Part shown: piece after piece, positions 52,685 to 62,699 of the stretch
Position numbering within the stretch: the first letter of the stretch is position 1
Layout: every line of letters starts with the position of its first letter
Assembly (NCBI GenBank): GCA_950097015.1
Contig: CATNEN010000008.1
Span: forward strand, 3,100,001 to 3,164,000
Direction: 5' to 3'
Length of the DNA stretch: 64,000 bases
DNA from: Macrostomum hystrix
Taxonomy: Eukaryota; Animalia; Platyhelminthes
Program-made: the position numbers and the translations under genes
Notes under the pieces: model-generated
The model's database searches: none
The model's input: the letters and a program-made list of their open reading frames with translations, nothing else
What the model was told of the DNA's origin: nothing

Positions 52685-53325
52685 GGTGCCAACCTACACT
52701 CTGGGCTGGGGTAGGTGCCAGCTTACACTCTAGGCTGGGTGGGTGCCAGCTTACACTCTAGGCTGGGTGGGTGCCAGCTTACACTCTGGACTGGGGGGTG
52801 GGTATCAGCCTACACTCTGGGCTGGGGGTGGGTATCAGCCTACACTCCGGGCTGGGGTGGGTGTCAGCCTACACTCTGGACTGGGGTAGGTGCCAACCTA
52901 CACTCTGGGCTGGGGTAGGTGCCAGCTTACACTCTAGGCTGGGTGGGTGCCAGCTTACACTCTGGACTGGGGGGTGGGTATCAGCCTACACTCCGGGCTG
53001 GGGTGGGTGTCAGCCTACACTCTGGGCTGGGGGTGGGTATCAGCCTACACTCCGGGCTGGGGTGGGTGTCAGCCTACACTCTGGACTGGGGTGGGTTTCA
53101 GCCTACACTCCGGGCTGGGGTGGGTGTCAGCCTACACTCTGGACTGGGGTGGGTGTCAGCCTACACTCTAGGCTGGGTTGGGTGTCAGCCTACACTCTGG
53201 ACTGGGGTGGGTGTCAGCCTACACTCTGGACTGGGGTGGGTGTCAGCCTACACTCTGGACTGGGGTGGGTGTCAGCCTGTACTCTAGGCTGGGGTGGGTG
53301 TCAGCCTTCACTCTGAGCTGGGGTT
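52685..53325. repeat. 29-31-bp minisatellite GTGTCAGCCTACACTCTGGACTGGGGTGG directly after the JAK stop codon
   Basis: Read directly from the sequence. Confidence 0.93.
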
Positions 53326-54194: not shown

Positions 54195-57100
54195 TTACAA
54201 GTAGTCCAGACTGCTTTCTCGTTGGCTCTTATACTCGTCCTCTGCAGTGGGTGGCAAGGCCGTAAGATAATCGTCCTCTGCAGTGGGTGGCAAGACCGTA
54301 AGATAATCTTCCTCTGCAGTGGGTAGCAAGACTGTAAGATAATCGTCCTCTGCAGTGGGTGGCAAGACCGTAAGATAATCTTCCTCTGCAGTGGGTAGCA
54401 AGACTGTAAGATAATCGTCCTCTGCAGTGGGTGGCAAGACCGTAAGATAATCTTCCTCTGCAGTGGGTAGCAAGACTGTAAGATAATCGTCCTCTGCAGT
54501 GGGTAGCGAGACACTAAGATACTCGTCCTTTTTAATAGGTAACGAAATTGTTAAACACTTGGCCTCTGCGGCAGGTGGTGAGACTGCGACCATTTTTCGA
54601 AATTGGCACTGTTGATGCGATTGAGTTATTGGCGAAGCATTGATGTAGTTTATATCATATCTTGGTGCTACATCCTGTGAAATTTAATTTACTAAAGAAA
54701 TCCAATCAGCAAAACTCGACCGCACTCACCATGCTGAACTGCTCGGCTTGTCTCGGCTTGGTCGCTTGTTTTAAGCAGTTTGACTTCTGCCTGATGACTC
54801 TGAGCTGGAGAGAGTGAAATATTAGTATAACGGTTGATTCGGTGAATTAAAATGATTTTAAATCATCACTAAGTATTCCAGCCCACACTAGCAAATTCAC
54901 CAGACAAAAAACTGCCGCCACAATGACCGCCAGCACCAGTGCAGCGCAGAAGCCGCTGATGACCCAGAGCAGCCGAGCATGAGCAGCTGGGCACTTGAGC
55001 TCGGCGCTGGCCATGTGCTCAAACTGGTTGCCCGGCAGGATCTGCACTGCTGAGCACCTGACTGAGCCGCTGCATCCTGGCCGCTCCGTCAAGACCCGCC
55101 AGTGACTGACGAGGCCAGCTGCCTCCGAGTGCTGAAACCGTGAACTCAGTTTTCTATCGCACTGAATCAATCATGAGCCATGATGCCCTGTTAGTCAGCT
55201 CGCTCGGGGAAACCAATTGGATTTCTGTGCCTATCCGGATTGTCTGGGAAATGAGGATCTTATAGGGTCTGAGAATTTGATCTAGCCTCTGGGATTTGTG
55301 AATCGAGGATCAAAGATCTAAGGATCTGGCGTCTGATAATCTGATCTTGAATCTGAATATCTCAGGATCTGGGATTTGAGGATCTGTGATATTTGTGATC
55401 TGGGGATCTGGGACCTGGGGATCTGGGACCTGGGGATCTGGAAACTGGGGATCTGGAAACTGGGGATCTGGGACCTGGGGATCTGGGACCTGGGGATCTG
55501 GGACCTGGGGATCTGGAAACTGGGGATCTGGGACCTGGGGATCTGGGACCTGGGGATCTGGGACCTGGGGATCTGGGACTTAAGCTAGTCTGCTCTACCA
55601 GCTATAGCTGTTCCACAAACACGATCAAGCTCATACTAGAGGCCTTAAAAGAATTCCGTAAGAGTTCTATCAGTTGTAATAGCTTACCGGAGAAACGAGA
55701 GGAAGTTTTCGAATCTCAATTGTGCAGTTAGCATCAATAATGGTGCACCTGTGCTCAGGCGAGGGCTGAGCTGCAGAGGAGACAAACTGCACGGTGAGGC
55801 CTAGTGCGAGGTCGTTGCTGCAATTCAGCACCGTGGCTGACACACTCGATGGCTGTTCTGAGGAGTGACGTGCGGCAGCTGGTCCAGTTGGCTATAAGTC
55901 TGCATTCCACCTACCCCTAACTTCTTACCCTAACGATGGGGGTGAGATGCAGAGCGGTCAACGCGTTTACCTCTCGCACTAAAGTCCCAGAGTACAGACA
56001 GTAAAGGACAGAGTGCTTGACGATGAGAAAAGTCAGGGCAGATGTACACACCTGTGTGAGTCTGTGCCTGCGTATCTGTGTATCTGTGTACGTGTGTGCT
56101 CAGGAGTCAGCGAAATAGGAAAAATTGCTCCCCCTCGCTGGCTGCGGGTCCACTGTGACTAAATGATGTGCAATTGTCCGCAGCCCTCCTGCAATTATTA
56201 CCCGAACAATATTGATGCCTCCTATCTAAATGGTGCATGCAATTTGTGCGCCTTGACAGCTTCTGCAGTATCTGAAAGCCAGGCTTTTGGGTTGGCTGCT
56301 GCAAGAGACACTGAAGTTCCACCTCACTATAGAGATCGCTATCAATATCACGTGTTTTGACTCTGCTATTACCACTTATAAGCTATGTACTTTTGCCCTC
56401 AGATTCTACATAGGGTGTTAAAGCAGAACAGCATTTGCTTGAACTTAATATTTCGCATCCAAAGTGATCCAGGAGTTGTAAGAATGAGAAATAATAATTA
56501 CTCTGGCTTTTATTTCAGTTCTTTTTAGCAAAAACTACTTGACTCACTGAGCACAGTCACCATGGCTGATGCTTGAATTGAGTCCGCCTTGCAAGTGTAC
56601 TTTCCCGAGTGCAGAAGCTGCGCCCGATCGATTTTAAGCTGGCCATCCGCATGGCAACTACCAGTTGGGGTGCACAGCTGGATCCTATGGGATATTGTGC
56701 TCAGCTTCGAGTAGTCGCACAGCAGCTTGCAGCTCACAATGGCTGTTGAATTTTCTTTCACAAATTCAGGTTCAGAGCGAACACCTGGCCGTGTAAATAG
56801 ACAAAGACTCTGCTCTGATCGGTAGTCGGTACTTTAACTACAGTTTTAGACGGTACGCAGGCACACACTCACACAGGTGTGTGTGCTCATCTTGCCCGAA
56901 AAGTCCCAAATCCTTCTCTACATGGCTGCGCCCCGCCGCGTGGCCTCGCCGCGGAATTGAGCTCAGGAACCTCGGTTCGCCACTCAATCCCATTTCACTA
57001 CACAGATTCTAGATTCACTGCTATTCACATACAAAGTGCTGAATGATCACACCTGCACTCTGGGTATTTTGAGTAAAATGGCTGCTTTGGCTTATCGAAA

Positions 57101-59300
57101 TTTCATTTGGCACCTCAGAACCGGAGCCTCAGCGCCAAATCGGCACCCTGATTTTTTAAGGCTGGAGCCAAAACTCTGAATTCATTTTTGATAAAGATAA
57201 AGACAATGGAGTGATTGAAGATCAGAATGACAAAATAATTGATGGATTAGAAAACTTCTAAGAAATCGCAGTGCTTGGCGGTTTTGTCTATTTTTTTTGT
57301 CGTGATTTCTTGGAATTCTAGGAAAATACTTGATTTGCTTGTGCCATAGAACATAATACACTAAGACAAACACATTAAGATTAGTTGCTTCTTGCTCGCT
57401 CATGTGTATACTACCTTACCAAGGTAGGATTACTAAATAGGCTAGATGCATGATAAAATCTGAGTGTATGACTATTGACTGACAGACTGTCTCAATGTAA
57501 ATATATCCGCAATGTTAAAAGAAAATGAATGACGAGGCCTATGGCTATGTAAAATGAAGCATGAGGGTGTATTTGAGGTCACATACAATTTTGACACCAC
57601 AGTACACCATCGTCTAGTCTGTCAACCAATCAGTCACCTCCCAACGCTGTTAGCAGGCGCTGCCAAATAGATTTTCTATAGGGGGAATTTCCGAATTTCC
57701 GAATTCCCCCCTTGGTATAAAAACGGGCGGCAAAATGGCTTGGTAGTCCTACTGTTAATAATGAAGCAACTCACTCAGCTGAGCTTTCTGGAGTGTCAGA
57801 TCGGAGAAGCTCATGTAGTCCAAAAAACTGGATGCGTTGGCTGCCGAAATGTCTTTTCTCAACAGGAGGTACCTGACCTAGAGATATTTGATGCAACGGC
57901 TTAGTTAAGACCTATAGGGTGTAATTTTTTGTACTAAGGGTGCTGTAAAATTTTCCGAGCTTGATCTGAGTACGAATTGCGTCTTATTAGACGTAAAATT
58001 GTAACATATTGACTTATAAACAATGTTTGATTACACAAAAAATTCATTACATAGGAATGTTTTCGTTTAAAGTTGTTAACGATTAAAAATCCCTACTTCA
58101 CGGTTTAATTTTAGATTCACAGATACAAATATTTGTCACTGTCGTTGACATGCCATGATAAAATTGGACTCACTCACCTTAGACCCAAACTCCCAATGAT
58201 TTTTTGGTGCACTCATTTCGTCACTTAATAGGCTGAATTGTTAATCGTGTCTGCAGCGATTTAAGTTTAACCCAATTGCTTTATCACTCACGTAGGCTGC
58301 GGTACATGGAAACATTTTGTCTATGGCCAGGCCAGGCATATGATTTCCCTTTAAACAATTTTGGGGTAGGGAATTTTGTGTCTATGACATTCAACAGCCC
58401 ATTGAATGGAACGGAGGGGGGAACCGGGTGCTAAAATGCGAAAGCGAGCAAGATAAAAACAACTCAGCCAGATCAGCACTCCATTCTTTTCTTTCCTCCA
58501 TGGCCTAATCGGACTCAATTTGTACTCAGGGCAAACAATAGTCCGGAAACTTTTACTGCACCCTCATATTTTGAGATTATCCTCGCAGACACAAAACAGA
58601 ATCGACTCACCTCTGCAAAACAGTCCACTGTGAACTTCTCCCCGGCTATGACCTCGCCATTATGTTTGCTCCTGGTGACGCCGCACCGTTTCCAGTGCTG
58701 TTGGGATTGTTTGAACTCTCTGCTCAGACTATTTGAACTGCAGTGATCGCCTGAGAACAGCTCAGCGTTGCTGCTTGTTGTCCAGATCTCTATGCCTTGG
58801 GTTCTCGGGTAGACATAATTAAACTCGTCTGAAAGCATGCGTTAGTTATTCTACCTGACAAAATAGCCGTAGAGCAGGCCCATTGTGCTTAACAAGCTCA
58901 CCCTCTCTGCCCTTCAAGGTAACCGATCTGATCAGCAATGTCTCATTTAGTCGCACCGCGAACCAGTGGAATCCGCTGTCTGCTTGGCTCTTGCTAAAGC
59001 TGTGCATGAACTCGTAGCTCAATCGGACATCTCGCACCCTGTCCTCAGCAGCCTGGTTCCTGGCATTGAAGCACGTGCCATTATAGCTGGAGGACTGCCA
59101 GGAACTGAGCACTCTGTTCCTTCGAACTTGGAAATCACCTAAATTTTGTGAATAAGTTGGCTGGGCGATCAGGTAGCCAGAGCAATATCACACGGTGCTA
59201 CAAAATCCGCACAGCAACACCTGTAGTACTCACAAGCAAACTCGGCTCTGGCCCATATGGCCCATTCTACCAACAGTAAAATTCGTAGAGAAAATTTCAT
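54195..59300 (-). CDS. Type I membrane receptor: signal peptide, F-type-lectin (F5/8C-fold)-like domain, Ig domain, further beta-rich segment, TM helix, Tyr-repeat tail. Exons: 59234-59300, 58902-59138, 58611-58828, 58292-58296 (or -58320), 58178-58232, 57775-57877, 56548-56784, unresolved link, 55688-55891, 54901-55161, 54730-54804, 54195-54674
   Basis: Signal peptide [19 protein letters not shown]. Lectin-like WQSSSY...FMHS...HWFAVRL...[11 protein letters not shown]...VRYLLL. Ig VSCKLLC...[20 protein letters not shown]...[29 protein letters not shown] followed by basic RVIRQK. Tail has repeated (D/E)DYLTV. Phases agree everywhere except between 56548 and 55891. Confidence 0.75.
54228..54530 (-). 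repeat. Coding 36-bp minisatellite (12-aa PTAE(D/E)DYLTVL(L/P)) in the receptor tail
   Basis: In frame with a spliced exon starting at 54674; units alternate as a 72-bp dimer. Confidence 0.88.
55398..55578. repeat. 15-bp repeat GGGGATCTGGGACCT in a receptor intron
   Basis: Read directly from the sequence. Confidence 0.92.
55938..56197 (+). mobile_element. SINE copy, same family
   Basis: GCAGAGCGGTCAACGCGTTTACCTCTCGC...GACGATGAGAAAAGTCAGGGCAGATG...CAGCCCTCCTGCAATTATTA. Confidence 0.65.
56858..56980 (-). mobile_element. SINE partial copy, same family
   Basis: GTGGCCTCGCCGCGGAATTGAGCTCAGG matches 15500-15530; the adjacent CACACAGGTGTG segment matches the family body. Confidence 0.55.
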
Positions 59301-61582: not shown

Positions 61583-62699
61583 TAGTATTATTATTATTAT
61601 TATTATTATTGAGGTGCGCACGCCGATTGGGTGCTGATTTTTTTGTTTATTTTATGTTTGAGGTTAAACAAATCGATTTTTTAAAGAGAAGGCGATAGGA
61701 AAACAGTAGCATGCGTAATTTTAGGTTATTAAAATATTTGAAAAAAAAACAAATTTTTGAAATAAACAAAGGCATTAAAACAAAAAATGAAATATTGAAA
61801 TTTAAAGAGAAAATTAAAACTGACCGAAAGGAGAATAGCGATTGTGTTTTCGCATTCTAACTATGGGCCTCAGGGCAGTGGCTTTTTATCTAGCTTTAAG
61901 TATGCTTTCTATGAAGTCCACAAAACTTTCTGTTAATTCTGTGCTGTCCTGTGTCACTAAATACACAGTTTTGTCATCAGCTGTTAGGCTTTCGAAAATA
62001 CGAACAATACCTGCCACTTTCTCTATGTATTTATTTCTAATTGGAACATAAACGGACTAATCGCATCTAAAGAGAATATGAGAAGTTTCGTTCTCTACCT
62101 CGACTCTACATTTTGGACATGTTCTGTTTTCATAGGCGATTTTCGGTCTTACAGTGCGCAATGTCTCACTGGCCAGTTTGTGGTCTCCTAGACGAAATCG
62201 GGACATTGTGCGCCTGCAGCACCGCATAGGGCGTTACAATGCAAAGGTTCTATTAGATGTAATTTTTCCAGATCGATTTTATTAAAAAGTTTTAAGTGAC
62301 GATGCAGAAAAAAATACCACGAAAAGTTAGCAGCAAATCTCTGCTAGCTTCTTCAGCTTGGCGCAGATCAGCACACGTACACGCCGTGGGTGGCGTTCTC
62401 AAGATTGCAGTCGGAGTTCTCATACTCTGCACCTCTCGCTGTCTGCTGACTCAGGGCCTGAACCTGAAGCTCCGTTTCTCTACTGCGGCTCTGCTGTTGA
62501 TTAAGTGAAAATCTCATGTACAAAATGCTCAGCTACATTCTAACACAAGCATGGTCCGGGCCAGAGAAAACACGTACCAAGCCGATGTGCTCCGACTGGT
62601 CCGAACGCACAACCCCTCGGCAACAGCGGGGAAGAGCAAGACTGATAACACCGAGCTGCAAGCGAAAAAGCTCGACGAGTGAACTCACGCAAAGTGGTG

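Follow-up and report, generated by a model that had tools for sequence, protein, structure and literature searches.

A predicted Macrostomum receptor gene combining an F-type-lectin-like head, an Ig-like domain and a tyrosine-motif tail apparently multiplied by a minisatellite

Introduction

Canonical F-type lectins contain the motif HX24RXDX4(R/K), along with a calcium-binding motif (h2DGx) and a disulfide between vicinal cysteines (PMC5712786). A departure from this scheme is found in Drosophila Furrowed (CG9095), a membrane protein with a degenerate F-type lectin domain, in which the basic triad is partly replaced (PMC5712786, PMC12221842). Furrowed is one of the membrane-bound chimeras named in the F-type lectin reviews consulted here, and none of these chimeras has immunoglobulin (Ig) domains together with a tyrosine tail. 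Here, we describe a gene that seems to encode such a combination. It lies on the minus strand of a 64,000-nt stretch of Macrostomum hystrix DNA (hereafter, the window), which corresponds to positions 3100001-3164000 of contig C8 in a 220-Mb flatworm assembly (G000); the same assembly served as the searched genome. On balance, we lean towards regarding it as an apparently intact nine-exon gene for a 605-residue type I receptor, in which a tyrosine motif, (E/D)(D/E)-Y-L-(T/S)-V, was multiplied to nine units by a minisatellite. New in this reading would be both the presence of an F-type-lectin-like domain within a new receptor architecture and the nine-fold multiplication of a signalling-type motif by a minisatellite in a coding exon.

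Several described systems share part of this layout. The known F-type lectins eel agglutinin (AAA; 1k12) and striped-bass FBP32 (3cqo) are soluble, whereas the protein predicted here is anchored in the membrane and also has an Ig domain and a tail of signalling type. By description, the level at which the two were compared, Furrowed is similar in being a membrane protein with a degenerate F-type lectin domain, yet it combines this domain with a C-type lectin domain, complement control protein (CCP) repeats and a transmembrane segment, and has neither an Ig domain nor a tyrosine-motif array. The vertebrate Siglecs, including CD22, are likewise built of a sugar-binding-type head, an Ig stalk and one transmembrane helix, and recruit SH2 proteins through several tyrosines in the tail; the structural matches of exon 5 of our gene include an Ig domain of CD22. 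In contrast, Siglecs use a V-set Ig domain as their head and not a jelly roll, and Siglec tails carry true immunoreceptor tyrosine-based inhibitory and switch motifs (ITIM and ITSM) as dispersed single copies with no tandem array. We regard this likeness as one of analogy, not homology. The Alr proteins of Hydractinia are clustered, lineage-specific type I Ig-like receptors, the tails of which are of ITIM type or resemble the immunoreceptor tyrosine-based activation motif (ITAM). Their tyrosine motifs conform only loosely to the vertebrate consensus; for example, the motif of Alr1 described as ITAM-like ends with YAPV, i.e., with Val at position +3 (bioRxiv 10.1101/2022.03.25.485889). Yet, they lack a lectin-like head, contain one to three motifs rather than nine in tandem, and are unrelated in sequence. 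In turn, several database entries of Macrostomum lignano appear to be true homologues with the same domain order, but their tails are devoid of the repeat.

To our knowledge, almost no immune or self/non-self receptors have been characterised in free-living flatworms. Siglec-type or allorecognition receptors would find a lineage-specific counterpart in the family to which the gene belongs.

Structure of the gene

The gene model consists of nine exons running from 59300 to 54195, in which every border is GT-AG, the phases are compatible and no internal stop is present. Joined by their coordinates to check length, phase and stops, the exons sum up to 1818 nt, i.e., 605 codons and a stop. The exon 5/6 borders were set by hand from codon positions. 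The features of the gene are as follows (a slash marks an exon border here and below):

59234-59300, minus strand: exon 1, start codon and signal peptide; phase 1 at its end, donor GTGAGT
58902-59138, minus strand: exon 2, head part 1 (WQSSSY .. MHS .. GFHWFAVRL); 50-61% identity to paralog exons
58611-58828, minus strand: exon 3, head part 2 (D-EFNYVYPR .. IEIWT .. FSGDHCSS .. W.RCG .. FTVDCFAE)
57775-57877, minus strand: exon 4, final head strands (VRYLLLRKD ..); conserved in paralogs
56548-56784, minus strand: exon 5, single Ig-like domain (VSC .. HSGKYTC)
55688-55857, minus strand: exon 6, membrane-proximal domain (first half); 37-47% identity to paralog exons
55400-55579: 15-nt minisatellite inside the intron between exons 6 and 7, detected with Tandem Repeats Finder (TRF)
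54901-55131, minus strand: exon 7, membrane-proximal domain (second half) and transmembrane helix; donor VFCL/GTGAAT, phase 0
54730-54804, minus strand: exon 8 (predicted from splice signals and phase only), basic juxtamembrane stretch of 25 residues
54195-54674, minus strand: exon 9 (predicted join), cytoplasmic tail ending with ..SSLDYL-TAA; acceptor aatttcacag/G, phase 0
54222-54545, minus strand: putative coding minisatellite of nine 36-nt units in exon 9 (TRF and unit table)

We found that exons 2-7 match paralogous loci of the genome with 34-61% protein identity and with the exon order kept. The residues at the junctions also agree with the M. lignano protein models. The codon split between exons 1 and 2 encodes Cys, as in P0002 (..TDCEFPVRR..) and P0011 (..GLCRLKIARNR..), while the exon 2/3 junction (..KGRE/DE..) matches P0003. 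The exon 3/4 junction (..C../VRYLLLR..) is uninterrupted in P0005 and P0006, the exon 4/5 junction (..TVL./.P.SVS..) matches P0002, and a further junction (..L.PVS/..G.VS.W..) matches P0006. Since the paralog matches follow in order and the junction residues agree with the M. lignano models, the gene up to and including the transmembrane exon is secure, and it is a real gene.

The original prediction had listed a signal peptide, a lectin-like pattern, an Ig domain, a transmembrane helix and a tyrosine-rich tail. All of these are present on the minus strand in 54195-59300, with the head motifs spread over three exons, and they are not a matter of chance because the head, Ig, membrane-proximal and transmembrane exons are conserved in paralogs. 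It had overlooked the membrane-proximal domain encoded by two exons (55857-55688 and 55131-54901) and the basic juxtamembrane exon (54804-54730). Two open stretches within intron 3 (58430-58293 and 58240-58178, minus strand) have perfect GTGAGT donors but no paralog support, and were left out of the model; conceivably, they represent alternative exons, decoys or what remains of an insertion.

A receptor family of Macrostomum

At the DNA level, the genome contains no fewer than 27 paralogs of head exons 2 and 3. The invariant family columns kept by this copy amount to 33/78 in exon 2 and 34/72 in exon 3. The characteristic order of head exons, Ig exon, membrane-proximal domain and transmembrane exon, together with the conserved junctions, is present here. 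The number of Ig exons differs: one in this gene versus three or more in paralogs.

Outside of this genome, the family seems to be narrowly distributed. A profile (A1) built of exon 2 from seven paralogs and run against 1.84 billion representative proteins (E<=0.001) retrieved just 11 of them, ten bearing M. lignano names and one originating from a JGI metagenome. The M. lignano homologues, automatically named "Ig-like domain-containing" or "uncharacterized", include UniProt entries A0A1I8JJS2 (P0006), A0A1I8H6B9, A0A1I8GJD6 and A0A267DY59. They share 33-62% identity per exon and the order of head, (Ig), membrane-proximal domain and transmembrane segment, but are too distant for an orthologue of this gene. 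Their tails are short, with two or three tyrosines (..EYENSEYKLENATGIYIL, or ..ECSYLSV..DCTVYLEIV), and none contains the repeat. Another candidate relative, P0014, was dropped as chimeric. The sole relative without an M. lignano name is P0009 (JGI/IMG, 1598-nt contig), a divergent family member with 27-33% identity, whose source is presumably flatworm DNA within an environmental sample.

Literature searches retrieved no paper joining Macrostomum with an F-type lectin, and broader ones gave nothing on this receptor family. With relatives known only from Macrostomum by name, apart from the metagenomic protein, the view that this is an unrecognised type of receptor holds. As judged from sequence, the gene belongs to a Macrostomum-restricted family, the members of which would be composed of a signal peptide, an F-type-lectin-like head, an Ig-like stalk, a membrane-proximal domain, a transmembrane segment and a tail with tyrosine motifs.

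Fold of the head domain

Database profiles do not recognize the head directly. Exon by exon, the head exons had no match in Pfam, and phmmer with exon 2 against the PDB gave nothing useful. With P0003, the best full-length relative, neither PF00754 (F5_F8_type_C; 16.7 bits against a cut-off of 28.2) nor PF22633 (14.5 bits against 27.8) reached its threshold. For structure prediction with AlphaFold2 (AF2), we used the homologue P0006, which is 44-56% identical to the head exons of this gene, with an alignment of 45 rows of relatives and paralog exons; P0003 was rejected as a folding target, as the final head strands are missing from its model. The P0006 model has a predicted local distance difference test score (pLDDT) of 70-94 in the head and is poor elsewhere.

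Foldseek with the P0006 head model placed the striped-bass F-lectin 3cqo first (E 3.7e-5) and eel agglutinin 1k12 seventh. By VIA-align, 1k12 (Z 11.9), 3cqo (11.4) and lectinolysin (10.7) were followed by CBM32 modules, galactose oxidase and neuropilin (Z about 10.3-10.7). These two F-type lectins are the best structural matches, with 133-138 residues aligned at a root-mean-square deviation of 3.3 and 17-19% identity to the head. They are also the top two, and the only two meaningful, matches of the family sequence profile among all PDB sequences (3cqo, E 0.055; 1k12, E 0.1), and strand motifs resembling WW-R-V-DL and SVT-I-xNR-xD are common to them and the family. An F-type-lectin-like jelly roll is therefore favoured for the head by two independent, if individually weak, lines, i.e., the structure match and the PDB profile search. 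The jelly-roll fold expected by the original prediction was thus recovered, on the model of the homologue. Within the superfamily, the choice of the F-type remains a preference, as CBM32 and galactose-oxidase N-domains lie only about 1 Z unit lower.

The likeness extends to part of the sugar-binding site. In the profile alignment, the Arg of the family KGRE motif falls on Arg79 of eel agglutinin and the Arg of YPR on Arg86, with a 3-residue insertion before the second Arg. Both counterparts are conserved in the family, the YPR Arg being invariant in paralog alignment A2, so that 2/3 residues of the fucose triad have aligned counterparts. Other features weigh against an F-type lectin in the strict sense. 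The modelled head belongs to a homologue and not to this gene, and the head scores below Pfam cut-offs. The family His aligns with His47 of AAA and not with the sugar-binding His52, a position occupied here by Ser. In the aligned segment there is no CC after R-x-D, equivalent to Cys82-Cys83, and no DG calcium motif, and the Asp following KGRE is not conserved among paralogs. The spacing in this gene, H-X31-R-E-D-X7-R, departs from the canonical HX24RXDX4(R/K), in agreement with the longer spacing, displaced distal Arg and atypical fucose motif noted earlier. Of the initial assignment to F-type lectins, the fold thus stands, as modelled on the homologue, while the canonical identity does not: the head falls below Pfam cut-offs, and neither a counterpart of His52 nor the Cys-Cys pair nor the calcium motif is present. 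Because the His52 equivalent, CC and DG are absent and the Asp is variable, sugar binding by the head is conceivable, but use of the classical triad would be unlikely.

Scanning of the genome with PF22633 gave 131 matches, none of them in this gene or its paralogs. This profile, which describes the canonical F-type / NedA-like galactose-binding domain, marks a separate, large expansion on contigs C1, C3 and C7 (e.g., C1:8455116-8463417 and C3:4453030-4462596). Its exon matches above the cut-off number at least 131, and many of them form tight tandem arrays. They are unrelated in sequence to the head of the family described here.

Ig-like domain and membrane anchor

Exon 5 matches Pfam Ig_3 with 18.9 bits (E 0.0023; cut-off 30). 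When its own sequence from the window (56549-56782) was folded by AF2 together with 24 paralog exons, a model with pLDDT 83 was obtained, for which Foldseek returned Ig domains of Izumo1, Lingo-1, AMIGO, LAG3, CD22 and NCAM (TMq 0.54-0.72). Residues C18, G60, Y62 and C64, which correspond to the Cys pair of Ig strands B and F and the G-x-Y-x-C signature, are invariant across the 25 paralog exons. The Ig domain of the original prediction is hence confirmed as a predicted Ig fold, from the exon present in the window itself.

Exons 6 and 7 encode a conserved, family-specific membrane-proximal domain of no recognised fold, and exon 6 matches residues 222-275 of P0006. Neither the membrane-proximal nor the transmembrane exon has a Pfam match. 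The hydrophobic span of exon 7 is 19 residues long with a mean Kyte-Doolittle hydropathy of 2.82, and the overall architecture supports a putative type I membrane protein.

A predicted repeat-built tail

The tail exon encodes 12 tyrosines in 159 residues. Its core is a 12-residue unit, xLPTAE(D/E)DYL(T/S)V, present in nine copies (TRF period 36, 8.3 copies, 91% matches), seven of which retain YL(S/T)V, the other two being decayed. The inner units are arranged as an exact higher-order repeat of 72 nt. The edge units are 21-27/36 identical to the others; the diverged first unit retains DEYLSV, its other half having drifted. As the inner units are identical, the expansion is recent. The DNA encoding the transmembrane segment and tail occurs once in the genome. 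Pfam searches with the tail exon produced weak low-complexity noise only.

The original prediction described the tail as ITIM/ITAM-style, which we can support only in part. The tail exon contains no match to the strict ITIM, (S/I/V/L)-x-Y-x-x-(I/V/L), to the strict ITSM, T-x-Y-x-x-(V/I), or to the strict ITAM, Y-x-x-(L/I)-x6-12-Y-x-x-(L/I), and these results count against our model. The zero scores arise because position -2 is acidic (Asp or Glu) and position +3 is Val. With Val permitted at +3, six overlapping Y-x-x-V-x8-Y-x-x-V pairs are found, and the tail may be described as ITAM-like in spacing, with Val at +3.

Paralogs typically end in another way. Their common tail exon, of which there are at least 17 copies, has one E-C-x-Y-L-T-V..P.A motif and, after it, DCT-x-Y-x-E-I-V. 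The tail described here has only the YL(T/S)V core in common with family tail exons and no alignment beyond it, so that the array might derive either from an amplified family motif or from convergence. What appears to set this copy apart from its paralogs is the repeat-built tail, together with the single Ig domain.

The 159 genome matches to the tail protein were rejected as relatives. On inspection, they turned out to be unrelated 36-nt satellites (PTAEANLQDTLK, YLPLYQSTYLSV and others) that lack the acidic YLTV motif and in many cases contain stops. Among arrays of 36-nt period, L027 (G000:C25:8218559-8219074) and L020 (C27:132518-133116) form long open frames composed of LKPTAEANLQDT and YLPLYQSTYLSV units. 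They share with the tail repeat the period and the letters "PTAE", but not the acidic YLTV motif.

Proposed function and phosphotyrosine readers

If the nine-exon product is made, its head would bind an extracellular ligand, possibly a glycan, and probably not by the canonical fucose triad. Clustering of the receptor could then lead to phosphorylation of the acidic tyrosine array by a Src-type kinase. With a 12-residue spacing and an ITAM-like register, the array may provide a multivalent docking platform for SH2 proteins, e.g., a tandem-SH2 phosphatase of the SHP type; the YxxV motifs could also drive AP-2-dependent uptake. In this scheme, we infer the joining of exons 8 and 9, the phosphorylation, the binding partners and the ligand.

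Candidate readers of such a tail are encoded in the genome, where we counted 77 SH2 exon matches. At L028:1977-3299 (minus strand; G000:C1:10614977-10616299), one long open frame combines an SH2 with a tyrosine-phosphatase domain (PF00102, E 5.9e-75), and another SH2 lies ahead of it at C1:10616342-10616578. This SH2-SH2-phosphatase is of the SHP/Corkscrew type and is a plausible reader of tyrosine-motif tails. Two other open frames, L029:3616-4614 (minus strand) and L030:2239-3138 (plus strand), encode two SH2 domains each, and may represent Syk/Shark, p85 or other proteins. No Syk-type kinase was identified, which counts against the scheme; neither a kinase nor any other domain was detected within about 3 kb of these tandem-SH2 frames.

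Alternative explanations

The critical step of our model is the junction between the tail and the receptor exons, which we judge from splice signals and phase to be reasonably probable. Paralogs L023 and L024 leave the transmembrane exon at the homologous codon (VFCR/GTGAGC vs VFCL/GTGAAT here), so read-through does not seem to be the habit of the family. From this point, two short introns (96 and 55 nt) with strong, pyrimidine-rich acceptors (exon 8: ctctctccag), one GTGAGT donor and phase 0-0-0 connect the transmembrane exon via exon 8, strongly basic and located directly after the membrane span, to the one frame with the acidic YL(T/S)V motif. The core of this motif is that of the first tyrosine motif in the common tail exon of the family, and the open frame overruns the array by about 43 codons upstream and 8 codons downstream to the stop. 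No usual family tail exon (class A, ..EYENSEYKLEN..Y; class B, EC.YLTV..DCT.Y.EIV) is present downstream of the transmembrane exon in the window that could serve instead. It is nevertheless conceivable, though clearly less probable, that the repeat is a non-coding minisatellite in the 3' untranslated region or beyond the gene, and that the tyrosines are an accident of one frame. The receptor would then be tail-less or short-tailed, ending soon after the membrane span by read-through or through another small exon, and the gene would be one more, rather divergent, family member. Several observations count in this direction and against our model. All three frames across the array are open, with one Tyr per unit in each, hence the open frame is no proof, and the window and the genome are rich in minisatellites, many of 36-nt period and also open. 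The GTGAAT donor of the transmembrane exon is an imperfect consensus, from which read-through would meet a stop 17 codons later. Exons 8 and 9 show no homology above noise to the paralog loci, nor is the tail exon detectably homologous to the usual tail exon of the family; a word search of 5.8e9 protein clusters likewise found no relative of the tail. No transcript was found by the protein-cluster and junction searches: a product of this gene is missing from the same database of 5.8e9 clusters, and an exact search of JGI metagenome contigs for the exon 8/9 junction gave none, the latter being weakly informative. A gene that is unexpressed altogether, i.e., a cluster-edge copy in recent decay with frames open by chance, seems improbable. 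It might be suspected from the one Ig exon, against three or more in paralogs, and from the larger, satellite-bearing introns; yet nine exons free of stops or frameshifts, intact splice sites throughout and the conserved family residues retained in exons 2 and 3 are difficult to reconcile with decay.

Even a translated tail could serve chiefly for sorting rather than for phosphotyrosine signalling. YxxPhi motifs bind AP-2 when unphosphorylated, and the tail contains seven matches to Y-x-x-(L/I/M/F/V). Through binding of these seven YxxV to the mu2 subunit of AP-2, a cargo or scavenger-type lectin receptor might be endocytosed constitutively, and a lectin-like head would fit such an uptake role well. 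We hold this to be unlikely, since a single YxxPhi suffices for sorting and the nine-fold amplification is left unaccounted for. The acidic residues immediately before the Tyr are typical of tyrosine-kinase substrates, and in the paralog tails the YL(T/S)V motif is accompanied by a second one, of the TxYxxI/V type characteristic of SH2 docking. Returning to the model of a signalling tail, we put forward as a speculative extension, of low probability, that the translated minisatellite functions as an evolvable gain control. Each unit would be a phosphotyrosine docking site, with neighbours paired in ITAM-like register for tandem-SH2 proteins. Unequal crossing-over would make individuals differ in how many sites they carry, and alleles of one lectin-like recognition receptor (immune, allo- or mate-) might thus differ in signal strength. 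If expressed, the tail exon would offer a natural series in which the effect of docking-tyrosine number on receptor output could be studied.

Surroundings of the gene

A tail exon of the other class of the family (..AEYENSDCNLENATHGVYV) is located at 62374-62568 of the window (minus strand), 3 kb upstream of the start of the gene, and is the 3' end of a neighbouring receptor gene. The gene described here is therefore the last member of a cluster that runs past the window end, where loci L011-L014 contain at least eight further head exons. Just downstream of the gene, a 29-nt satellite occupies 53000-53324 of the window. Blocks of GC skew at 22-31 kb and 40-47 kb (skew 0.47-0.62) suggest that the window holds more strand-biased satellites.

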